From Vitrella brassicaformis CCMP3155 (lineage: Eukaryota > Protista > Chromerida), in assembly GCA_001179505.1 (NCBI GenBank), contig CDMY01000262.1:62001-126000 (forward strand): a stretch of 64,000 nt of DNA. The letters run 5' to 3'. The position numbers were made by a program, and so were the translations under genes. The notes below the pieces were generated by a model that saw only the letters and a list, made by a program, of their open reading frames with translations, searched no databases and was not told the origin of the DNA. Shown here piece by piece: positions 239 through 26,696 of the stretch; within the stretch, counting starts at the first letter, position 1, and each line of letters starts with the position of its first letter.

Positions 239-1134
239 TTGCTGATGCAGGGTGGGCTAGGCGCATAGCCCAAGCGCCAGGCAAAAGGATCAAGAACTGA
301 AGGAGATACGGGCAGAAGAATGCCGAAAAAGCTGATGCGCGGCGAAACTGGCGATAAATTACTAGCTTTTCGAATTCCGGGGCTGTCTCGGCCATCGCGG
401 AATTCTCGCCGTCTCCGGACGCGAATCTCGAAGCATTCCGAGCCCAGGGGCGGAGAAGGGTTGCTGCGAACGGCACAGAAATGCAAATGCGGACATATGT
501 CACACACAAATGTTGCACAAACGAGCCATGGCAAACGAGTCAGCTCTCGTGGCCTTCTTGCTCTTGGATGGGGCTGAAAATGCTGGATTTGAGCAAAGCA
601 GCCCCTGAGCATCCTCCATCATCCTCCGCGACTTGAGAGTGGCTCGTGGGCTTGTACAACAATCAGCAGTGTGGGCTTCTACAACACTCAGCAGTCAGCA
701 GTGGAATCAGCTCGTCCCTATTTGCTTGCTTTACTCAGACTTGCTGGACGCAATTGCTGGACAGGGGACGCCTGGTGCAGCGTGACCGTTGATTCTGCGT
801 GCTCGCATATACTGCACCCAAGCTAGGATAACAGCGACATGGGGTCTGCTGTCGGACAGGATGCGAACGGCCGCCATGTGTTCGCTGGACATGTTGTCTG
901 CCAGCACAGAGTCATTCGTTCAAGGGACCATGCACACCATCGTGTTAACAAATGCACACACAGCGATGGTCAGCCAATTGGTCAGCCATCAGTCCAGCTC
1001 TGCAATTCGGCAACTAGATGTCCATTGCAGCATTGTCTGTCTGTCTGTTCGAACTTTCGAGAACTGAAAAACGGCACCAAGCTCACTGAAGATACACACT
1101 ATACACACCCACACCCACACCCACGCCGCTGTCC

Positions 1135-2495
1135 TCACAGGACCACCTCCAGCAGCCCACATGCGCCGCATTTGATGAACAGCGCCTCGTAGTCCTCATT
1201 CAGCTCAAACTGAGCCGTGGCCATGCAGTATTGACTGCACACAGAGAGAGGGAGAAACGGTGCAGCCAAGGAAGACCATGTGTGGGAGTCTATCTGATCT
1301 CACCTGTGTTCCTTGACGGCCGCGTCGAGGCGCTCCCGGACTGCGTCGCGATCCAGGCCTCATCCTGACCACACACAGACAAGGAGCAATCGGTGTGCCC
1401 ACCGGCTCTGTGTCCGTGAGTGTGTGGGTGTGTGGGTGTCCCTGCACCCACCTGCACACAGAGCCTGAAGCCGCAGCCGCCGACCTTGCACATGACGGTG
1501 CCATAGCGCACATCGACAGTCTGCCGACCGCACAGTGGACACACAACTGCACACAACCAGGCATCCACACCAACAACCGTGCACAGCATTTCTGTCGGTC
1601 GGGGTGAGCTTACTGTTGTCTTGTTCCCGCAGCCGCCATTCCTCCTCGAGTGCGGCCGACTCCTCGTCCAGATCAGCGTCCTCGCGAGCCAAATACTCCT
1701 CCCCCTCTGAACCAACACACACCAACCACCAACACACTCACGGATGCTCTCGTGTCAGGCAGCTTTCGTGCCCGCCCACCGACCCTGTATTTGCATTTCC
1801 TCCTTGATCGATTGCTCGATGAACAGCAGCAGGTCGATGTACTCATCATCCGCCAGCGTAATGGCCACATCGGCATCGTCCTCGCGCATGCTGATGTCCA
1901 GGGGCTCACGGACGGCTCGTCTGGCCTCTCGCACAGACGGCAGGGAGGGCGAGGGCGGCAGGGCAGATGACGGCCGCTCCTGTTGGTAGGGCGCCTGGGG
2001 TGTGGTCGACGCCTCTGCGATGCTATCGTTGTAGACATCGAGGCAGCTTCAGCGATCTGGTGAGCCACGTCACGGACCTGTGGACACACACAGAGCACCC
2101 AGATGCATGATGCGCCCTCCTCCCTGATCCCTCCTCTCTCCCCACTGACCCAGTTGCCCGTCACCGCATCCGATTGTGTGAGCTCAACTCTGCTAGCAAA
2201 ACAACAAAAACTGGTGGCTCTGGACGTATTGTGTGCTGAATGCGATGAGTGCGTTGTGCTGCTGACCTTCTGTAGTCGTCGAGCAGCCGCTGCCTGTCTT
2301 GCTTGAGCCGCTCCAGGCAGATCCGCCGCAGCTCTTGCTTGGCGCGGGGCGTCCAGTCCCTCTTGACGCCCTGCCGCACGCCAACACGGGGACCATCGCC
2401 AGCAAGCGACATGAGCCGACGAACAGTCCGCAGATCGAAGCAGATTGGATTCACTGAGGGACTACTGGCATCATGGTGATGCTATGCTCCTTCAT
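1135..2495 (-). CDS. RPAIN: RPA-interacting protein (RPAIN/RIP-like), multi-exon
   Basis: The spliced exons give N-terminal GVKRDWTPRAKQELRRICLERLKQDRQRLLDDYR (RPA_interact_N-like) and an acidic middle DEYIDLLLFIEQSIKEE. The C-terminal Zn-finger reads VVCPLCG..CKVGGCG..EH..C..F..LFIKCGACGLLEVVL, with TGA at 1135-1137. The start codon (2495) is uncertain. Confidence 0.8.
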
Positions 2496-2597
2496 GGGCC
2501 TCTCCTTTTGCAGCCAAAGCATTGCGAGCTGCAGAGATGCTCTGCAGCTCAGCTCGCAAGTGGGCAAAGCGGATGATTTTGCGCTTCTGATGGGGCC
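2496..2597. promoter_or_regulatory. Putative bidirectional promoter (RPAIN / DusA) with inverted AGCTCGCA pair
   Basis: About 100 nt separate the divergent starts. TGCGAGCT at 2523-2530 and AGCTCGCA at 2551-2558 flank the inverted repeat ctgcagag-atg-ctctgcag. Confidence 0.5.
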
Positions 2598-3928
2598 ATG
2601 CTACTGGCACTCCTACTGATCTATCAACTACAGCTCTGCACAAGCTTTATTCGACCACAGGACATCCGCCATGTCGGCAGCAGACACCGAATGCTCGGCA
2701 GATTGGCACCCAGAGCGGCCGCAGGGGATATGCACCGCTTCTCAGTGGCTCCCATGATGGACTACACCGACAAACACTTCCGCTTCCTCATGAGGCTGCT
2801 CACACGCAACGCGACGCTGTACACAGAGATGGTCGCCGCCAACGCCCTCTACTACACCAACCGCCATGCAGCAGCTGACGCCACAGCCGATTCCATGATT
2901 CCGCGATCTCTGGCGACGAACGCCGAGAGCATCGAGTCGCCTTGTGTGCTGCAGCTGGGCGGATCTGACCCTGATGTCCTCGCAGAAGCGTCGCGGATGG
3001 CATCGACATATCATCCTTTCACAGAGATGAATCTCAACTGTGGCTGCCCGTCGGAACGAGTCGCTGGCAAAGGGGCTTTCGGTGCGGCACTGATGCGAGA
3101 GCCAGCTCTCGTTGCCGAGCTGTGCAAAGCGATGCGGCAGGGCGGGGGGCGGCCGACCACCGTCAAGTGCCGCATCGGCGTGGATGACCATGACTCGTTT
3201 GAGGAGCTGCAGCGGTTCATCGCTACCGTGGCTGAGAGGGCGCATGTGTCCCACTTCATCATCCACAGCCGCAAGGCCATCCTCAGCGGCCTCTCGCCAG
3301 AGCAGAACCGCAAGATCCCGCCACTGATATACGAGTACGTCTATCGGCTGGTGGAGGGCTTCCCGGGTCTCCGGTTCACGCTGAATGGCGGCGTGCTGAC
3401 CTATGAGGACATCGACACGCACTTTGAGAGGTGCCCGACACTGACTGGGGTGATGGTGGGGCGAGCGGTGTTGGACAGGCCCTTCTACTGGAGCGAGGTC
3501 GACTCGCGCCTCCACGGCAGAGACAACCCGGGGCTCAATCGACGAGAGGTACACTGCAGAAGATACTAGGACCTTCTGACCTCCCAAACACTCTTGTGTG
3601 TGTTTGTGTGTGGTGTGTGTAGGTGTTGGCTGCGTACGGCAGCTACTGCGATGCAGAAATGGAGCGCACCGACCCGTCACGGCAGAGGTCTCTCCGCAAT
3701 CTGCTGCTCAAGCACGCTCTCAACCTGTTTGCTGGCGAGCCCATGAGCAGGAAATACAAGCAGCGAGTCGAGGCGTTGCGGCAGCGGGGTGACGTGTCTG
3801 TGTCGGCCATCCTGAGTGAGGCGGGGGAGCAGCTGCACGAGGGTGTGCTCGAGAGGCGGCCTGGGAGTGAGGGGCAGGTTGCCGCTGACTGCAGTGACAG
3901 TGTGTTGATAGGGAGAGAGATGGGTTGA
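2598..3928 (+). CDS. dusA: tRNA-dihydrouridine synthase, DusA type, with N-terminal signal + transit-like extension
   Basis: Motifs FSVAPMMDYTD, YTEMV, LQLGGSDP, NLNCGCPS, GAALM, TVKCRIGVDD, IIHSRKAIL.GLSPEQNRKIPPL, NGG, GVMVGRA are present. One intron at ~3549-3622. Confidence 0.93.
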
Positions 3929-5439
3929 TGTGTTGTGAGTCGTGTGTTTCTGCGACATGGTCGTTGATTGCATCACTGTGCCTCCTGTATGGCGTGGAGG
4001 ATCTCCTCTCTTGTCTTGTCGATGCTGGCAACACAAGAGTGGAGAGCCTGGACGTGGCTCAGGAGGCACAGTGTGTCCATTGTGCATCTCGGTCGAGACA
4101 AGTTGAGTGACATTCTGTCCATGTAATGGCTGTGTCAGGTTTGGGCCGGCTAATCTGTCACGTTCACGCACACGTCCAAAGAGGGCACCAAATACCAGTA
4201 GTGGTCGCTGTGGTCGCTAACCATACTGACACTCGAAACCAACACCGCATGTGCGATGTGATCCATGTGATGTCTACTTAGCAATCTATCAGTCGAGTCC
4301 AGTCGAGTCGGTCTGTCTGCCCGCCTGCCTGCTGGTCGAGTGAAACCAAATCGAGTGAGAGTTACAGTCTCACTGCTGGCAAGAAATGCATCTCAAATGG
4401 CGGACCATCCATCCACCTACTCACATGCACTGCCTGCACGGGCAAACGCTTTGCTATCAGGTTACAGGACCACTGCAGTACTCAACGCTACGCTAATACA
4501 CGGCACTCTATCAGCCAGTCAAGTTGGTCTACCTATCTTCCTGCAAGTCAGTGGCACAACATCCATCCATCCAGCCATCTGAGCGCAGTGAGTGAGCGCG
4601 GCGGCACTCACTGCACTGCACTGCATGACGCACAAACTGGGAGGGCAGCTCGTTAGTGTCAGCAGCAGCAGCGGAGTCCGTCTGCCACGGAGGTCATGTC
4701 ATTCGTGTAAGTCAGTCACACACGCACCACAGACCAAGCCAGCACATACACCAAGGACATCCATCCAGCTGACCAACACACACGGGCAAAAGACATCCAC
4801 ACGAACCCAGCCCTCAAGAGGCGTACGGAGCGTCTCATCGGGCAGCACGCACGACAGAACGAAACACGGACGGACAAATGGACCTGCGCATCGCATCCAC
4901 ATCACTCGCTGCCTCCCTTTTTTTGTTGTATGTGTGCGGCACAAAAAATAGTAAGTCAGCAAGGACAAGAACCCCACGCTCACGTGTAACGTCACGTGTA
5001 CACCACACCAGCCATGCACCCACCCCTCCTGCCAGCCAGCCAGCCAGGCTGCCAGGCTGGACACTCGAGCCTCTTGGTACCAACCAAAAATATGTATCAT
5101 GTATAGCCATACTCACGAGCCATCGCCGTTGGTTCGTATGCAGCGTGGGCTGCCTGCCTGCCTGCCTTCATGTCAGAGCCAACCCACCCACACGCACTGA
5201 TGAGAGGCGACCCGCCGACACTCTCCAGATGCTCCCCCTCGGTGGATTGCGGCCTTAGGCCGCTCCGCCACGACACCATGGCTTTTGACAGTATGGCTCG
5301 TGACCACGATAAGCGTGGGTCGACTGAATCAGACACCAAGTCCACTCCTGCACCACAACCACAGCAACCGATCGATACATGAACGTCATCCATCCATCAA
5401 TGCATTTGTGCGCATGGACTCTTCTGCTGTGGTCAATCG

Positions 5440-8068
5440 CTCACCGACTAGGGATCTGAGGCTGTACAAATGGCTGCATAGTTCTCAGGGATGTGATCCT
5501 CCCGATGCCGATGTCGGGCCGCTCCGCAACGAACGCACCTGCCCCTCCGACCGCTCCAGCTGACGGTAGTGCAGTGCCCTGGCTCCTCAGTCAGGTGACC
5601 TGCCCGGCGACCACCCTCGCCCCCTCCACCTCCGCCGGCACGCCACGCATGTCCATGGTGCCCCTGCGGTGGACAGCGTCGCCCTCACCGGGCTGCTGCT
5701 GCTGGAGTGGTAGGGCCACCGATCGTGTGGCGGCGGGCATGGCAAAGTCGGGGCCGGTGACCTGCTCCTGGCGCGACGGACGGTGGAAGAGGGGAGTCTG
5801 TGCGCCAGAGGAGCTTGGTGGTGCTGGGCGTGCCGTTCACGGCACCTGAAGGCATTCGTAAACACATCGCACACACAGACAGACAGACAGACAGATGCAC
5901 CCGTCCATTCATCCAAGATGCAGGTAGGTCCGTCTTTCTGTCTGTCTGTCTGCCTGTGCGTGCTGTGTTTCACTTACCGGGGATGGAGTGGTGGCGAAGA
6001 AGGGCTGCCGTCCAGCCGAACTCTAAAGGCACGCACTCCCGGAGGAATGACTTGCCGATGAAGGCACGCACTCCCGAAGGAATGACTTGCCCGAGCCAGC
6101 CAGACAGACAGCCAATCGCCTCCACCTACACACACAGACACAGACACACACAAACAGATACACACACAGACAGAGACACACAAGTATGTGCACACGCGAG
6201 ATGAGCACATTTTCGCGTACGGTCATACGCGCCTACCTCCCGAAGCGCCAAAGATGACCGACATGTTGACTCCTCGAGTGTTTTCCGGGCGGAAGGCCGC
6301 GAAGAGGGGCCGGAAGCCGGTTGAGTGGAGCTGCACGTTGATGCCGCGGCGGGACTTGCCTGTGGCGACCGCCAGTCGGACACCACATGGCGCCTGCTGG
6401 TGGGGCCGTGGGCGAGACGGTCTCCTCCAGCTGCTGCTCGGGATTTTGCTCTTCTTCTGTCAGTGTTTCTCTCTCGCCCTCCCCCTCAGCTGGTGGCAGC
6501 AGCAGTGGTAATGCCGACGCGGGAAGGTGGCCCGCAGGAGGGAAGGGACGTCCTCAGGGCGAGGGCGGGGTAGTTCCACCCACAGCCGAGAAAACACGGC
6601 CGACGGATCGCTGCACACACACACACACACACAGCGCATGCACTGGTATGACTCAATGGTCGCGATGCCCATTCTCTTGGGTCACCTTTGCAATGCTGTG
6701 CGGTGGTCCACGAAAACTTCCTGACGGCCCGTAGGTAGGTCTCCCGCACCTGGATGTCACATCGCACTCACTCGACTCACCGCTGCCCTCCGCCGCCCCT
6801 CCCCTGTGCTCCAGGAAGGCCTTCACGACAGCTAGGGTGCCGTTGGAAGGCTGTTTATCGCCCTCTGTTGGTCTGGCGGGGTGGCTTCGCCGGTCGGAGA
6901 CAAAGAGGTAGGTCTCGCCGGGTAGGTCTGCCTCCATGGACACCACCACCGGGCCAGGTGACCGGCCGACGGGCTGGATGACCACCCCGGCCCTGAGCGA
7001 CTACCTCGCTCGATGACCGCTTGCGCTTGAGGACCAACCTGAACCAACAAGAGAACAGACACATGCAGACAGACTTGTGTGTGTGGTTGTGTGGTGTCGT
7101 GTCGCCTTCGCTTACCCATGCAAGATGGACGTTTGTGAGAGGAAGCAGACGTTGTTTCTTCTTTCGGCCCTCTTTTGGGGGCCTCTCTCTGTTTTGGCCT
7201 TCTTGTCGCGGGCATACCCGATGTCTTGCTGGAAGATGGTGTGAATGATGCGCTTGCACTGGCTGTCCCGTGCCTGCTGCGGCAGACGGTCATAGTAGGC
7301 GACGACCCTGCCGCGCTTCTGACGACAACACTAACAAACCATGACAGACACACATTTGGTTCCATCCATCCATCCATCCATGTGTGTGTTTGGCGCACTT
7401 GGTGTTCTCTCAGTGCGGCGATGCACAGCTCCTGGAAGAGCTGGCACCGCGACGCCACCACAGAGTCCAAGTCGAAGGGGGCCCGTATACTCATAGTTCA
7501 CCAGGCGCCTCTTGACGCCCACTTGAGGCGCTTCCGGGTGTGCCGCTGTGTGCTCATTCAGCAGTCCGTAGTGCTCGTTGAGTGCGTCCACGGCTGCGTA
7601 CACGTCCGCCCTTTTGCTGAGGTACTTGCGCAGACGAGTGATGGATACGCTGGTCTGCTTCTGGCCGTGCTTGATAATGAGCTCGATGAGGCCGGTGGCA
7701 TCCAGCCCGAAGCCTCCATTCAACGCCACGGCGACCAGGTGCTCGTCGTACTCGCGGATATTGCGGACGTCCTCTGCGGAAGATGCGGCAGTGGCGGCAC
7801 GTGCAGCATGATGCTGATGCTGGGATGAGGCGGACACGCCCATGGCTGGTCTCCCATGGCTCAGATCTCTGGTGCAGGCTGTCTGTAGCTACCCCTCTGG
7901 CCCTTCCTGGGCCGCCCCCGCCCCCTCTTGACAGGCACCTCCTCGACCACCACGTGATCGTCTTGCTCCATGTCCTCATCGCTGTCTTGATAGAGGTCGG
8001 GGTCATCGAGGTCCAGACCCTGCGACTAGCCATCGCCATTCTCATACACCGACTCGCTCTCGCCATCG
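5440..8068 (-). pseudogene. Degraded multi-exon gene with acidic tract and AT-hook (KRGRGRPRK)
   Basis: Coding-like segments (DLDDPDLYQDSDEDMEQDD..VKRGRGRPRKGQ; EDVRNIREYDEHLVAVALNGGFGLDATGLIELIIKH; RVVAYYDRLPQQARD..; GTMDMRGVPAEVEGARVV) have splice signals but are interrupted by in-frame stops and frame changes. Confidence 0.5.
6026..6091. repeat. Two-copy tandem repeat, period 35 nt
   Basis: aaggcacgcactcccg(g/a)aggaatgacttgcc at 6026-6056 and 6061-6091. Confidence 0.85.
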
Positions 8069-18752: not shown

Positions 18753-21197
18753 TTTGTGTGTCTGACCTGCAGACGAGCATAGCCATGCTCATGCCCTTCC
18801 CCCGCAGGCGCATTGGAAAGACCTCTGCCGGGATGATGTAGGCCATCGGACCAACACCCAGCGAGAACGACGAAACGAAGCCCATGAACGCTGCCACCTT
18901 CAGATAAGGGGCGTGGGCGAAGAACCACGCAGCTACGGCGAATGTGTAGAGGCAGGCACTCATCATCAGACAGCTGATCAGCAGCAGGGGGCGCCTGCGA
19001 GCAAACCATTAACAGTCGGGGCGTCTGTCTGCCTTGGTCTCTGACCTGCCCATTTTGTCCACGAGGTATGCGGCGACGACAACGAAAGAGACCTTGACGA
19101 TGCCGATGAGGATGGTGCCGATGAACACCTCCTGCTGGGTCGACAGGCCCACCTGCATCAGGATGATGTCGCTGTAGTAGGTCGCCGCCTCCACGCCCGT
19201 GATCTGGGACAGCAGAGCCACACCAAGACCTGTTCAACACCAGACACACACATGGAAAGAGGTCAAGTCAAGGGAGGGCTCCTTCCATTTCGTATGTACC
19301 TGTGAAGACCATTCTTCGCGCCTTTCCGTCTTGTGGGCACAAGACGTCAAGCCATGAAGCCCCCTGCTGGCTCTCCTGCTTTTGCGCCTCATGGATCTCA
19401 TTCATGGCCTGAGGCAGGACGAGACACACACGCACAGGACGAGAATGGACTTCTGCCTCTGCTGCACGTAGCTGATCACGTCCTTCCCCCACCCATTCAC
19501 CTTATTGATCTCTGATGCGCGCGTGACTTGCATGAGGACGGCGGCAGCCTCCTCATCACGGCCGCGTGACATCAACCAGCGTGGCGGCTCGGGAAGACCA
19601 GACACACCTGCACAAAACACAAAACACAAAACGCAGCCGTGCGCACGGCCATGGATGGCGACATTCGTCTGCGTTGTTCTTCTTGTTCTGCATGTACCTA
19701 ATAAAATGACGACAGGAGGGATCAGCCCCATTCCAATCATGAAGCGCCAGTTGACGGTCGGCGGCAGGTCCACATACACGTAGTTCATGACGTAGCCCAA
19801 CACGATGCCCACGTTGATGGAGATCTCACACATGGTCGTCAGGCCGCCCCTCAGCTGCGCGGGGCTTATCTCCGCGGCATACAGGGGTGTGATGACCAGA
19901 CCCGCACCCACACCCAGCCCCGTGATCATTCTCCCGAGCAACAAGTACTCGAACGTCGGCGTAAAGGTCATGAGAAGCCCGCCAGCGATGAAGGTGAGCG
20001 AGGTGTACATGACGCAGGCGCGACGGCCGTAGGAATCAGCGATCTGCACGAAGAACACACAGACAGGAATGGGAATGAGGCGTGTTGTCTTTGTGTGGCA
20101 TGCATGGGATTGACCGACTGACCGACCATTCCAGCCAAGATGACACCGCCAGTGGCCACCAAGTTCAGAATCCCTATCGTCACCTCCGTCATGAAATCAC
20201 TCAGTCCGAAGGACGATTTGACAAAGACAATAGCCCCCGCCATGACGCCGATGTCATAGCCCAAGAGTGCAGACGTCAAACAAACGAACCCAACGCAAAG
20301 CACCACGAAACACGCAGGCGGCACCCGACACCTGCTCACAGACGGTGGCCCCTGATGGCCGCGGTGCTTGGGTGGCGACCTCCTCTTGGTGGCATAGCCG
20401 TGTTCTCTGAGCTTTGTCCGCTCGCCGAGTGACGTTGACGATGTGTGTGTGGAGGTGGGGGACGCATCGGTGCTGATGGGGGGCGGGGGGAGGGGGGTGA
20501 GCGTGATGCTCGGAGGGGGCAGACAGATGTGGGGAACAGCAGATCTGGCAGACATGGATGGACACGAGAAGAGAAGTGTGCCGGGTAGCGGTTGACGGTT
20601 GCTTGGTTGGGTCGCACGTACCCGTAAATGGTCGGTACAGGGCCATCTGTCGGCCTCGGTGTCAGCACTATCTCCCTGACGAAGCATACAGATGCAGGCA
20701 GGCCTCAAGTGTGCGCCATATGGAGCCTCTGTTTGCTGCGCACCGGAACTCGGCCTCGTGTGATGAGTGCGTGACGATACTGACGTTGGACTCGCGCCGC
20801 AGATAACGCGGAGAGGATCTCCGAGTGACGCCCCTGAACCAAACGGGCCAGACGCACACATCACACACTCAGAGCATCTCGCTCTCCGTCGTGCTCTTCA
20901 CCTGGGCGTCAGGTCAAGGTCATCGTCTTCCTGAAGGCACTCGTGCAGCACCGTGAACCCATTGATGAGCGAAGGTGAACAGGGAGGCGACACACTTGGC
21001 GAGATCTTCTGCAGATGTAGCAACGAAACGAGCACATGAAGATGAAGATGCCTGCAGTGGCTCGTGACGCGCACCTGTTTGTGATTCTCTGCCACATCTT
21101 CCCATGAGGTTTCGGACACAAACCCGTCATCGGTGTTTTCCTCAGAAAGTGGCAAATATCGCTGCCCCGGCGCTCTGCCTCTTCCTTCAGCCCTCAT
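18487..21197 (-). CDS. MFS sugar/polyol porter (SP family) with long N-terminal cytosolic extension
   Basis: Motifs LLGYDIGVMAGA, ADSYGRR, GRMITGLGVG, PLYAAEISP..LRG, WRFMIG, PEPPRWL, QITGVEAATYYS, DKMGRRPLLL, GVGPMAYIIPAEVFP..LRGKG, VPETKGKSLEQ. TGA at 18487. The start is 21197 or 21305. Confidence 0.93.
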
Positions 21198-21303
21198 CTG
21201 GTCCTCCCCTCCTCCGCTTCCCCTTTCTGTGACCTTAGCTCGCAGAGATCTAAGCTCGCAGAGATCTGCTGGCCTTTCGGTTGCCTCTGTGCTCTGATTC
21301 GTC
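21198..21303. promoter_or_regulatory. Putative bidirectional promoter with tandem AGCTCGCAGAGATCT
   Basis: Direct repeat agctcgcagagatct at 21237 and 21253, lying between the divergent transporter and NSDHL starts. Confidence 0.5.
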
Positions 21304-22840
21304 ATGGCGAAGAGTGCCCTGGCGATAGGAGGGTGCGGTTTCCTCGGCCGCTGCCTCGTACCGATGCTCCGGGAATGGGGCTACCGCGTCGCTGTCATGG
21401 ACCTGGCGCCCAACTGCTATGAAGCACACACGGTGGGGAGAAACGTTGCAAGCAAGAGAGAGATGGGCAGGTGTGGTGCATGTCGATCTGTGCTTTGCGC
21501 TGTGCAGGATGTGTCGTATGTGCACGGTGATCTGACGTCGGCTGCTGACCTCGACAGGGCGATGGGCGGCATCGATGTGGTCCTGCACGTGGCGTCGCCC
21601 AATCCGCAGAAGCTCGACAGGGCCCTCTTCCAAAAAGTCAATGTGGACGGCACTCAGGTGAGTGAGTGAGTCCAACAATACACACAGATAGACATCTGGG
21701 CCAGGCCATCTGCATGACGAACGAGTGTGTCGTGTGGTCCAGGCCATCATCGCTGCCTGCGTCCGCAATGGCGTGCCGTGCCTCGTGTACACCAGCTCGG
21801 CCAGTGTGGTGTTCGGCACTACGGGCCTGGAGGGGGCGGACGAGTCCATCCCCTACCCTGCATACCAGCCAGACGACTACAGCCACTCCAAGATGCGGGC
21901 AGAAAAGGTCAAGCAGGCAGGCACACACACGCACACTCTTTTTGTACATCGCTGTCATAGGGTTTGTGTGTGTGGTGGGGTGCATCCGTCAGATGGTGCT
22001 GGATGCTCACAGCGTGGGCGGTCTGCACACGGTGGCGTTGCGGCCCCACGGCATCTTTGGCATCGACGACCCTGGCTGCATGGGCGGCTTCCTAGAGGCA
22101 GGCCGCAAAGGCAAACTCAAGACCATACTCGGCAATGGAGACAATGTCGTCGACTTCACGTAAACGAAGTCACACTCGCGCTGTGTGACAAGACAATGTC
22201 GTCGACTTCCTTGCTGTGTGTATGCAGGTGTGTGGAGAATGTCGCTCATGGTCACGTGTTGGCTGCGGATGCGCTGCTCAAGGATGGCGGGGCGTCGAGG
22301 GTGGGCGGCAAGGCATACAATCTCACCAATGCCGAGCCCATTCGCTTCTGGAGCTTCGCTGCCAAGATATGCGGAGAGATGGGGTGCGTGAATGACACAC
22401 ATCTGCAGCCAGTCACATGCATGTGCTGTTTGGGTGGTGTCAGGTTCGATGTGCCTCGTTACAAGATCCCCTACTGGCTTGCACTGGTGGCTGCCAACGT
22501 CTCCGAGGCACTCATCGGCGAAGACGCCCACCTTACAGTCAAAAAGTACACACAGACACCACCGCAACACCACACACACGACCGTGCCACATTCACTTCC
22601 TCTCCTGTGCTGTGTGTGAGCAGGGTGCGTCTGGCCGGTCTGCCCCACTGGTACCGTTGTGATGCGGCACAGAGGGACTTCGGTTATGCGCCGATTCTGT
22701 CGCTCGAGGACGGCCTCAAGAAGGCGTGCGCAGCCGCAAGGGAGGCGCAGGCACAGAAGGGCGAGACAGCCAAAGTGCCACCGAGAGCACCGCCACCGAG
22801 TGAGGAGGCAACAAGAAAAGAGAGGAGGAAGGACACGTGA
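21304..22840 (+). CDS. NSDHL: Sterol-4-alpha-carboxylate 3-dehydrogenase (3beta-HSD/decarboxylase, NSDHL/ERG26); probably the N-terminal half of a fusion with CYP51
   Basis: Rossmann GGCGFLG, VLHVASP, VNVDGT, LVYTSSASVVF, catalytic YSHSK, LRPHGIFG, GNGDNVVDFT.VENVAHGH, AYNLTN.EP..FW, H(W)Y.CD.A.RDFGYAP. Seven exons. Confidence 0.92.
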
Positions 22841-22861
22841 GCGGCGTCTGTTGCTTCGTGT

Positions 22862-25711
22862 ATGGGGTGTCCGTCAGGCTGGCTGCGGTTTGGCGGTTTT
22901 GGTGTGTCGCTTCTCGGCCAGGTGGTCAGGCTGGTTGCCGCTGTGTCGCTCGTGTGCCGCCTGGGGGGCATCCCACTGTCCATCACGCTGCCCTTTGGCC
23001 TGGGGGCCGTGCTTGCCTGGTCATCTTGGTCACTTGCTGGGGTGATCCTCGGCACATCCCTGGCCGTCATGGCCATATCCATCGTCACAGGGTGAGCAAA
23101 GGAAGCCACAAGAGGTGCTGTTGGAGTGCGTATGCCCGGTTGTTTCCCCTCAGAGCGGACCCCATCCCCGAGATCAGTCCCTATCCGATTATCGGAGTGA
23201 TTCCCGACTTCGCCAAGAGTCCCCTGGCAGTGCTCAAGAGGGCGTCGAGGGAGTACAGGGATGTGTTTCGGCTCAACCTGGGTGGCATGCGCATCACATT
23301 CTTCACGGGCACCGACGGCCTGGACGTCTTCTTCAAGAGTAGAGACACACAACTCAGCCAAAAGGAGGTCTACAAGGTAACTAGACGAAGCGAGAACAGT
23401 GGCCATCGTGTGCATGAGGCTTCATGTGTGTGTTGTGTGTGGCCATCCATCCATCCCATCAGCTGACGGTGCCCGTGTTTGGCAAGGGTGTGGTGTACGA
23501 CGCCGATCTGGATGTGCGTCTGGAGCAGTTCCACATGCTGACGACGGGGCTGTCTGAGCGACACATGAAGAGATACGTCGGATACATGGTCAAGGTATCC
23601 ATCCACACCGAGGGATGGCACCATCACACACACACACAGCCTCATGTTGTGATGCGGCTGTCCGTGTGTGTCGGATATAGGAGTGTGAGATGTACTTCAG
23701 CCGCTGGGGCGACTCGGGGGAGGTCGACATCGGCGAGGCGTTCGCGGAGCTCATCATACTCACCGTACACATACCAGCCACCACACATGGATGGAGGGAA
23801 GCATTATGTAGCGGCACGGCCTCTCGCTTTGTCTCCTTCTGCAGGCGAGTCGCTGTCTGATGGGTCGTGAGGTGCGCGAGCAGATGTTCGAGGAGGTGGC
23901 CAAGCTCTACCACGCTCTCGAGGAGGGCATCACGCACATCGGCTTCATCGCACCCTGGCTGCCCATACCCAAACACCTCAAGAGGGACAAGGCGCGCAGG
24001 CAACTCGTCGACCTCTACTCTAGGGTGGGCAAGCAATGCAGCCAGACAACACAATGAATGCGCTTGACCCGATGTGTGTGCAGGTGTTGCGGGCTCGGCG
24101 TGCAGCAATGGCTGAGAAGGATGCGTCGCTGTCGACCGAGACGCAGTCGACCACACAATCGCAGGAGGACAAGACAGACGATGAGGACCTGGAGCACGAC
24201 GTCATTGAGGTGAGTGGGCAAGACAGACGGAGGGGATCACCTCACGGGCAGGCACTTTTGGTGGCGTGTGTATGTGTGCAGGTGTTGCTCAAGAGTCGTT
24301 ACCGTGACGGCCGTGCCCTGACCGATGATGAGCTGTGCGGCATGCTGATTGTCCTCCTCTTCGCCGGGCAGCACACCTCATCTGTTACATCACTTTGGCT
24401 GGTCGGCCACACACACACACCCCCCCCCCCCANNNNNNNNNNNNNNNNNNNNNNNNNNNNNNNNNNNNNNNNNNNNNNNNNNNNNNNNNNNNNNNNNNNN
24501 NNNNNNNNNNNNNNNNNNNNNNNNNNNNNNNNNNNNNNNNNNNNNNNNNNNNNNNNNNNNNNNNNNNNNNNNNNNNNNNNNNNNNNNNNNNNNNNNNNNN
24601 NNNNNNNNNNNNNNNNNNNNNNNNNNNNNNNNNNNNNNNNNNNNNNNNNNNNNNNNNNNNNNNNNNNNNNNNNNNNNNNNNNNNNNNNNNNNNNNNNNNN
24701 NNNNNNNNNNNNNNNNNNNNNNNNNNNNNNNNCCCCCCCCCCCCAACACACACACAGATATCGATGTGTGGTCATAGCTCTTGCTGTCCCTGTCTGGCTG
24801 GGTGTGTGTCAGAGCGTGAACCTGTTGTCAAATGCGTCTCGTGTGATGCCCAGCCTGGTGAAGGAGCAGGAAAGTGCCGGGCCGGTTGACTTCGACATGA
24901 TCAGCAAATCGCTCCCAAAACTCACGGCAGCCATCATCGGTAACCACAGACACACACATGCACGCGCATTGGCTCGCTCTCACCCCCACGAACGCCCCTA
25001 TGTGTGTGTCGTTCGACCAGAGAGTCTGCGTATGTACCCGCCGCTGTTCTTTCTGTTCCGCTACGTCAAGGAGCCTCTGGTGTTCAAGGGCCGGGTCATC
25101 CCCACCAACAGCACGGTGGCCATGTCGCCAGCCGAGACGGGCAGGAACCCCGACATATTCGACCAGCCCGACTTCTACCAACCTGCACGATGGCTCACGG
25201 TGCGCACACTCAGACAGGCAGGAAGGGCAAGGGACCTCATCCTTGTCTGTCTGTGTGTGTGTGTGTTCAGAATGACTGGGACGAGTGGCGCAAGGTGTCC
25301 AAGTATGTGTCGTTCGGCTCTGGCGGCCACACGTGCATGGGGCGGCGGTTCGCACTCCTCCAGATCCGCACCATCTTCTCTCTGCTCATGAGGAACTTCG
25401 TACTCGAGCAAGCGTATGCACACCCACACACGCCCGACCAGGACAAAAGACACAGCAACCACCATCCTCCCTCTCTCTCTGTCTGTGTCGTGTTGTCGCC
25501 TTGCCGTTGCTGTGCCAGTTCGCCGGTGCCAGCAGTGGACGAGACGGCCATGGTGGCCGGCCCCAAGACGCCCTTCCGCGTTAAGTACAGGAAGATCCAC
25601 ACCGGGACGGCAGCACTCATGGGCATCGACGGACAGTGCGGCGACCTCATGGACGCGTGGGGATTCGACGAGAAGAGCCAGAAGGTCGCTGATGCGATGC
25701 GGGCGTTTTGA
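22862..25711 (+). CDS. CYP51: Sterol 14-alpha-demethylase (cytochrome P450 family 51)
   Basis: [17 protein letters not shown] (B' helix), [16 protein letters not shown]-helix [18 protein letters not shown], heme motif [10 protein letters not shown]. The N gap lies inside an intron. Confidence 0.95.
24433..24731. other. Assembly gap (N run) inside a CYP51 intron, flanked by poly-C
   Basis: Run of N. Confidence 0.99.
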
Positions 25712-26696
25712 CTGAGAGATCTCTCGTGCTGCATCCGGGTTCTTGTGTTGTCTTGTGTGTATGTGAGAAATGCAGTCGAGCGTGTGAGAGTGCTAGCGGG
25801 GGAGAAAGGCTGCTGATCCATTCATCTGCGGCCGACATTTTTGTCGAGTGAGTGAGGGGCTCTCTGCTGAGCTGTTGAGGGCGGCTGCACGTTTGCATAA
25901 CACGCCCCATTTTGCATTGTTTTCGTTGCTGCTGTGTAGTTTTGCGCACGATAGATATGTTGAAGTGTTGGTTGTCTTGGTCGGGGTGTCATCAGATGCG
26001 ACGTCGCGTCGGCCCCGGGCCTTTGTGGAAGAAGGTCGGTCGGGGGCCGTGTGCGGTGCGTTTTGTGACACACCGACCGAGGCCGACGAATGCCTACTCG
26101 CCTGTCTGTATGCGAGCTCGAGTTGTGTGCGCAGTGAGGCTGGTTATGTTTCAGTGAGACGGAGCTCTGTGCTAGTGCCTTGGTGTGCTGCCATTCTTGA
26201 AAAGAGGTGACATTCATGGTCAGTCCTCCCTCAGCAGTGAGGGGGGCAGCACGGAGGCAGGCCACAGGTGTGCAGGGAGCGATGGGATGGGATGTACGTC
26301 TCACGTCAATGCATAACACTTCTATAAGATTGACGATTCTTGATCTGTTTATCGACACTGCCACACACACGTCGCTAGCCCTGACTAGCTCCCTTCCTCC
26401 CTCCCTCCCTCCCTCCCTCCCCACATACTTACACCCCTGCTCACGGTCCTAAAGTACACACACGGCACGAACGCCTTAAACCACAACGTCACTGCATGAC
26501 GAGTAGGGCCTAGGACCTTAGACAACAAAGTAGGTGAGCGTATCAACTCACTCACGTGCACCAGCGCACCAACCAACCCACTGACTGCACTCACTGTCTG
26601 CCCACATCACATCACCACACCACACATCGCTGCTGGGAACGACTCATTGCGCAACACTGTCCAGCCAAACGGGGCTGCGGGCGAGAGGGAGGCCCG

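Follow-up and report, generated by a model that had tools for sequence, protein, structure and literature searches.

The stretch analysed here is a 64,000-nucleotide (nt) window from the chromerid Vitrella brassicaformis CCMP3155 (contig CDMY01000262.1, positions 62,001 to 126,000). On its plus strand, at window positions 21304-25711, it carries a single multi-exon gene with short GT..AG introns, whose predicted product joins an NSDHL/ERG26-type 3β-hydroxysteroid dehydrogenase/C4-decarboxylase domain to a sterol C14-demethylase, CYP51. With the exon boundaries located by anchor strings, the spliced coding sequence of 2766 nt reads in one continuous frame into a protein of 921 residues (101.1 kDa). 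The whole mRNA spans 21269-26351, with transcript 5′ ends at 21269/21273 and poly(A) near 26351. A TGA lies in frame two codons 5′ of the ATG at 21304, which is therefore the first possible start; the TGA at 25709-25711 closes the open reading frame (ORF) and is followed by a 3′ untranslated region of ~640 nt (25712-26351, the last transcript block being 25519-26341/26351/26361).

The NSDHL domain (21304-22799) is encoded by seven exons, at 21304-21432, 21508-21657, 21743-21907, 21993-22159, 22228-22383, 22444-22545, and 22624-22799. A 78-nt GT..AG intron (22800-22877) separates them from a linker exon (22878-23091), which encodes a hydrophobic segment of ~70 residues (residues ~350-420) recognized by hydropathy and in the AlphaFold model. 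The CYP51 domain and a C-terminal tail of ~38 residues (23154-25711) follow in ten exons, at 23154-23376, 23463-23594, 23681-23764, 23845-24024, 24084-24209, 24282-24401, 24813-24939, 25021-25199, 25271-25413, and 25519-25711. Together with the linker exon, the P450 half comprises 11 exons running from 22862 (unspliced) or 22878 to 25711.

Two domains were detected by Pfam in one and the same protein, 3Beta_HSD (PF01073, E = 2.9e-50) and p450 (PF00067, E = 8e-49, residues 408-860 of P0001). Comparison with solved structures matched residues ~420-886 to CYP51 6q2c (3.7e-104) and human CYP51 3jus (6e-88), and the top matches in the PDB were all CYP51s. Moreover, proteins of cryptophytes, red algae, green algae, and plants that bear the name sterol 14-demethylase share 40-44% identity with the CYP51 part. 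This places it at or above the 40% identity used to delimit the family, and it falls among CYP51s in a phylogenetic tree. Residues 2-236 match human NSDHL (6jkg, 1e-50), the sole solved relative found for this domain; its closest named relatives are called sterol-4α-carboxylate 3-dehydrogenases, and its assignment to NSDHL rather than to another 3β-hydroxysteroid dehydrogenase subfamily is a putative one based on best matches. The motifs of an extended short-chain dehydrogenase/reductase (SDR) are present, namely GGCGFLG at residues 9-15 (the GxxGxxG NAD site) and YSHSK at residues 139-143 (YxxxK). CYP51s are marked by the signatures YxxL/FxxPxFGxxVxY/FD in the B′-helix/B′C-loop and GQHTS in the I-helix. 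The Vitrella protein carries the first at residues 492-507, the second within AGQHTSS at residues 696-702, and the heme-thiolate motif FxxGxxxCxG at residues 825-834. A P450 and a partner domain in one ORF on one mRNA make this a natural P450 fusion. No flavodoxin, FAD/NADPH-reductase, ferredoxin, or cytochrome b5 domain was detected by Pfam in the fused protein, which sets it apart from fusions with redox partners.

In unspliced DNA the same region can be read as two genes. The NSDHL frame runs on to a TGA at 22838-22840 and an ATG stands at 22862-22864, so that two complete ORFs lie only 21 nt apart. An earlier examination of the letters alone (the sequence-only reading) had proposed that a donor, CCGA|GTGAGG at 22799/22800, and an acceptor, CCGTCAG|GC at 22877/22878, define an intron that removes both the stop and the ATG; all four positions proved exact. 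The 78-nt length of this intron is a multiple of 3 and the frame is kept, the junction codon being Ser349 within APPPSWLRFGG. The sequence-only reading had also judged the intron to be of local style. Its length, GC content (0.56), and GT..AG ends match those of the gene's other introns (16, minus the one that holds an assembly gap), which measure 59-105 nt with a GC content of 0.50-0.60.

RNA evidence for this intron came from public data. Nine sequencing runs were compared with sampled words of 21300-24400. Two of them contain all sampled words, introns included, two more contain fractions of 0.98 and 0.87, and four contain about half, as spliced RNA should. These four RNA runs (X1, X2, X7, and X8), which stem from three studies, were then analysed over 20800-24430. 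The joint 22799→22878 is present in all four, and every intron of the model within this interval shows as a GT..AG joint. Single contigs of 3382, 3427, and 3252 nt (from X1, X7, and X8) lead from ~21269 through the NSDHL exons and across the joint into the CYP51 exons. The 78-nt intron is covered by no RNA contig, and the depth in the bin 22752-22873 equals the contribution of the spliced contig alone. In addition, three full-length transcript assemblies of 3427-3451 nt (L003, L004, and L005; two JGI/MMETSP assemblies and one Logan contig of SRR646408) each hold an uninterrupted ORF of 921 residues identical to the spliced model. Each matches the window in 18 blocks of 100% identity, with 17 introns removed, from 21269/21273 to 26341-26361; beyond ~26351, L004 closes with a stretch of A, the only poly(A) end seen. 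The predicted junction is thus the one really used, and the fused transcript and its ORF are as good as shown.

These data bear directly on the possibility that NSDHL and CYP51 are two adjacent ordinary genes, ending at TGA 22838 and starting at ATG 22862, with the spliced form a minor read-through chimera or a contig artefact. Such an arrangement would suit a compact genome in which a neighbouring head-to-head transcript lies ~45 nt away, the unspliced DNA does contain two complete ORFs, and contigs spanning two genes do not by themselves prove a single transcript. However, the joint requires a pre-mRNA over both parts and is the only form in the four runs and the three assemblies; no contig covers 22800-22877. 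Neither the RNA contigs of the four runs nor the three transcripts show a 3′ end near 22840 or a 5′ end near 22862. Fused orthologues, described below, occur in four other organisms, one of them without any intron across the junction. The observations that would have spoken for separate genes, namely polyadenylation after 22840, an independent start before 22862, a lack of junction reads, or orthologues that are always separate, were all absent. We therefore regard the two-gene explanation as largely refuted and give it only a very slight chance of being right, and the single-polypeptide fusion proposed from sequence stands at the level of one mRNA, one 921-residue ORF, and two Pfam domains.

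The assembled genome contains one gap within the gene, a run of N at 24433-24732 flanked by poly-C and CA repeats, inside the intron 24402-24812; these positions give the span of the intron in the assembly, and its true length may differ. Three transcripts join 24401 to 24812/24813 at 100% identity, RNA contigs ending at 24401 read on with the letters found from 24813, and an alignment of the orthologues shows nothing missing at this position. Because the transcripts join 24401 to 24813, the gap is wholly intronic, with no hidden exon and a continuous frame.

An exhaustive search with a single CYP51 exon retrieved a 100% match to residues 401-474 of the 901-residue Vitrella brassicaformis CCMP3155 protein CEL98090.1 (UniProt A0A0G4EM83). 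This public model is already fused, with the same junction, and is an exact suffix of the 921-residue model. It begins at an internal Met (21364) and lacks the first 20 residues (21304-21363) and the NAD-binding GGCGFLG. The ATG at 21304 is supported by the transcripts and by an MMETSP ORF (P0054) that is identical to the 921-residue model. A by-product of the analysis is therefore a correction of the public model, whose start lies 20 residues too late.

Further fusions were found by the exhaustive exon search and by cluster look-up. Whole-protein and alignment searches returned the Vitrella fusion only; they missed those of Cardiosporidium and Rhytidocystis, although both were part of the query alignment, and that of Chromera, and their blank result is uninformative on the spread of the fusion. 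The same architecture is present in Chromera velia Cvel_1108 (998 residues), the cluster representative of which is a 496-residue CYP51 piece; in the apicomplexan Cardiosporidium cionae, as KAF8820568.1 (985 residues, annotated only as 'putative lanosterol 14-alpha demethylase'; gene at 1102-6235 of JADAQX010000352.1, L001); and in the apicomplexan Rhytidocystis pertsovi, as a 1024-residue transcript ORF with shorter isoforms (P0056/P0010/P0055). A truncated fusion, P0057, lies on a 1914-nt environmental contig, where an uninterrupted ORF leads from the equivalent of Vitrella residue 286, in the NSDHL C-terminus, across the linker and the entire CYP51 domain. The sequence-only reading had called for full-length single matches in relatives, and three organisms supplied them, with the environmental contig fused across the junction. 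The four full-length fusions align end to end at 40-45% identity. In Cardiosporidium, a single exon codes for the end of NSDHL and for linker helix 1, and the exon after it for helix 2 and the start of CYP51. The Cardiosporidium junction intron thus lies between the linker helices, elsewhere than that of Vitrella, and no shared boundary could split two genes.

Several candidates and searches added no further case. Eight CYP51-like fragments with N-terminal extensions of 85-150 residues (P0027, P0049, P0051, P0053, P0015, P0036, P0046, and P0017) were scanned and contained no NSDHL domain. P0072 proved to be an unfused CYP51 of cryptophyte type in the tree. A Foldseek search of the AlphaFold DB clusters returned no further NSDHL-CYP51 fusion.

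Maximum-likelihood analysis united the CYP51 parts of all five fusions in a single clade (100/100), within which the two apicomplexans are sisters (98/94). For NSDHL, the four full-length fusions likewise group together (99/98), apart from the NSDHL domains of other types of fusion, and the apicomplexans again pair (93/92). The single CYP51 clade indicates that the fusion arose once and is old, and the comparison of these sequences points to one origin before the divergence of chromerids and apicomplexans. Since the apicomplexan fusion genes group with those of chromerids, they do not represent host contamination. This history also bears on the stop and the ATG inside the Vitrella intron. The view that they are relics of a recent gene join was rejected, because the fusion is common to distant relatives and the Cardiosporidium intron lies elsewhere; the 13-codon open frame after the donor is unremarkable and no sign of a relic. 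The sequence-only reading was right that splicing removes both signals; they are incidental intron content in a fusion that is old and already present in the public Vitrella and Chromera models.

The residues expected to matter for catalysis are retained across the fusions. Invariant in the four full-length proteins are G9, G12, G15, Y139, and K143 in NSDHL, and Y493, F500, G501, Y506, G697-S702, and C832 in CYP51, in keeping with the claim made from sequence that the active-site motifs of both domains are intact. From these sequences, the fused protein would be expected to carry out both 14α-demethylation and 4α-carboxysterol decarboxylation. Long branches in the fusion clade, and GGQHTT instead of AGQHTS in the environmental P0057, could be taken to mean that only one of the domains is catalytically active and that the other does no more than anchor or regulate it. 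We consider this very unlikely, as the NAD glycines, the catalytic Tyr and Lys, the heme Cys, and the CYP51 signatures are kept in all four full-length fusions, and no separate Vitrella NSDHL or CYP51 appeared among the matches of the protein searches, which were not exhaustive. Two positions after the conserved B′-helix Tyr, the fusion clade has Leu, Ile, or Val and not the plant-type Phe. In work on trypanosomatid CYP51, such a residue at this position reportedly goes with a preference for C4-dimethyl substrates, and we take this as a lead only.

The linker is hydrophobic in every fusion, with a basic flank on its N-terminal side. By hydropathy, Vitrella residues ~350-420 form one continuous block of ~69 residues; the Chromera and Cardiosporidium linkers show two segments of ~20-28 residues with a loop between them, and that of Rhytidocystis two longer blocks. 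The AlphaFold model of the Vitrella protein has a mean predicted local distance difference test score (pLDDT) of 87, with both domains mostly >90. It shows a disordered, basic, Pro-rich stretch at residues 342-361 (pLDDT <50), followed by helices at residues 360-377 and 382-419. The simplest reading of these predictions is that the linker would form a helical hairpin leaving both catalytic domains in the cytosol. Two helices agree with both the hydropathy profile and the AlphaFold model, neither of which proves anything on topology or channelling, and the hairpin and covalent metabolon suggested in the sequence-only reading remain proposals.

The same disordered stretch, together with linkers whose length and sequence differ widely among species, would be compatible with a precursor that is cut in the Pro-rich basic segment or in the linker, the fusion then serving co-expression or co-targeting only. 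We judge this unlikely, although less so than an inactive domain: the five linkers have no recognizable cleavage motif in common, whereas the two-segment hydrophobic organization is conserved, as expected of a functional linker, and we know of no precedent for such processing among sterol enzymes.

Comparison with known systems helps to define what is particular to the fused protein. It resembles stand-alone CYP51s (6q2c, human 3jus, and plant and algal proteins) in family, in signatures, and in having a membrane helix directly upstream of the catalytic domain; it differs in that a second hydrophobic helix and an entire NSDHL domain stand N-terminal to this anchor. Among the best 120 CYP51 relatives outside the fusion clade, 119 consist of a p450 domain only, and the other, P0086, also has a cytochrome b5 domain. 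A further possible difference from stand-alone CYP51s is the C-terminal tail (residues 884-921, 25598-25708; P0054), which extends beyond the usual CYP51 end in all fused proteins. Within the tail, a Trp in an A/K-W context (W905 in Vitrella) is invariant, and two short helices are predicted with low confidence. With stand-alone NSDHL/ERG26 (human 6jkg), the fusion shares the extended-SDR family and the GxxGxxG and YxxxK motifs. Plant 3βHSD/D proteins named 'Reticulon-like protein' align to model residues 1-401/403 and also continue into C-terminal membrane segments. Whereas the membrane segment closes the protein in NSDHL and plant 3βHSD/D, in Vitrella it is followed by a P450.

Natural CYP51 fusions are represented by the CYP51-ferredoxin of Methylococcus capsulatus; the 551-residue 'Cytochrome P450 51' chain 6mcw may, we presume, be this protein. 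Proteins joining CYP51 to cytochrome b5 were also found among our matches (P0009, P0086, and AlphaFold DB A0A6S8EEU3). All of these resemble the Vitrella protein in that CYP51 is joined to another domain. Their partners, however, feed electrons to the heme, whereas NSDHL is a pathway enzyme acting at another sterol position. NSDHL-type domains occur in other fusions as well, either with a short-chain dehydrogenase of the adh_short family (668-741 residues, P0060-P0071, some named sterol-4α-carboxylate 3-dehydrogenase) or with cytochrome b5 (P0059 and P0069). They share with the Vitrella protein a C4-decarboxylase-type domain and a second domain; the partners differ, and their NSDHL parts belong to another clade. 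A 731-residue AlphaFold DB protein shows 20% identity to the model in an alignment that takes in both of its halves, and AlphaFold DB A0A290XS85 is among the other fusions listed. In yeast, Erg11 associates with Erg25, Erg26, and Erg27 through Erg28 in an assembly termed the ergosome. Yeast and Vitrella are alike in bringing a C14-demethylase and C4-demethylation enzymes together at the membrane of the endoplasmic reticulum (ER); the yeast association is non-covalent and scaffolded, whereas Vitrella joins two members covalently.

A sterol gene cluster was sought around the gene, and none was found; the neighbours are a major facilitator superfamily (MFS) sugar transporter and PARP. Upstream lies a minus-strand gene with introns at 20833-20900 and 21009-21074, and further on are the MFS sugar-transporter exons. 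Contigs of the upstream gene end at ~21216-21227, and the fusion mRNA begins only ~45 nt away, at 21269/21273; the head-to-head promoter region between the two genes is extremely short. Just 5′ of the mapped transcript starts, at 21236-21267, a ~16-nt unit, AGCTCGCAGAGATCT, is duplicated in tandem. A palindromic AGAGATCTCT stands at 25715-25724, 3′ of the stop codon. The window contains the word AGAGATCT 6 times, where 2.07 copies would be expected, a weak enrichment (2 of 100 shuffles reach 6). Other RNA contigs, from several runs, match parts of the introns 23377-23462 and 23595-23680 (near 23460-23463 and 23639-23640) and then continue into unrelated sequence, which suggests that these introns contain short repeats common to other transcripts.

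Based on these findings, we consider it highly likely that one Vitrella gene gives rise to a single bifunctional protein of 921 residues, in which an NSDHL/ERG26-type domain, a hydrophobic linker of ~70 residues, and CYP51 follow one another, and that this arrangement arose once. The protein would remain uncleaved, with both domains active, held on the cytosolic side by a two-helix ER hairpin, and co-assembled 1:1. We propose a plausible scheme for its organization. Helix 1 would be the C-terminal anchor of the NSDHL domain and helix 2 the usual N-terminal anchor of CYP51, and the resulting hairpin would place both catalytic domains on the cytosolic face of the ER. The covalent join would then fix a 1:1 stoichiometry and hold two sterol-demethylation enzymes in permanent proximity, as a covalent version of the association of sterol enzymes in yeast. 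In the fungal and animal order, a Δ14-reductase and a C4-methyl oxidase act between the two reactions, and plants interleave the steps differently. As the two reactions are not consecutive, the likely gain would be co-localization or co-assembly and not direct hand-over of a product.

Several points weigh against this proposal. Other steps separate the two reactions, so that substrate channelling is no obvious gain. The ~69-residue Vitrella block may hold three spans, which would place the NSDHL domain in the lumen. Cleavage may occur in the predicted disordered stretch at residues 342-361, and we infer both the intact protein and, from the sequence, its two enzyme activities. Finally, the RNA evidence consists of assembled contigs, which drop rare isoforms, and a minor intron-retaining mRNA may give a 362-residue NSDHL alone.

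The data themselves are not new: the fused proteins are in public databases, and both of their domains are detectable there. The fusion is apparently undescribed, since no paper describing an NSDHL-CYP51 fusion was found in the full-text literature, a scope that lies outside subscription-journal papers on chromerid sterol genes. CYP51 is here joined to another enzyme of the sterol pathway, and the CYP51 fusions otherwise known or seen involve electron carriers (ferredoxin and cytochrome b5), which makes this a rare case in which the partner is no electron donor. Fusions of enzymes of the same pathway provide natural evidence of enzymes working together, and here the C14-demethylase, which azole drugs target, is linked to a member of the C4-demethylation complex. 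To our knowledge, physical association of the C14 and C4 steps in yeast and animals is known only from interaction studies. The Vitrella gene offers a ready-made single cDNA with which to ask whether tethering two steps alters sterol flux.

Beyond enzymology, chromerids and apicomplexans could be united by the fusion as a shared derived character. Apicomplexans have been described as having lost sterol biosynthesis, and in the chromerid genome paper and the Cardiosporidium paper sterol synthesis is mentioned only as an apicomplexan loss (PMC4501334, PMC7737231). Two apicomplexans nonetheless have, judging from their sequences, an apparently intact NSDHL-CYP51 gene, and enzymes of the sterol pathway are thus retained in no fewer than two lineages of the phylum. 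A broader and more tentative view, to which we give somewhat less than an even chance, is that the fusion is an ancient, lineage-defining trait of the chromerid and apicomplexan stem, forming through its hairpin the covalent core of a C4/C14 demethylation complex on the cytosolic face of the ER, and that its retention in Cardiosporidium and Rhytidocystis would mean that sterols are still made or remodelled by some apicomplexans, against the general view that the phylum has lost their biosynthesis.

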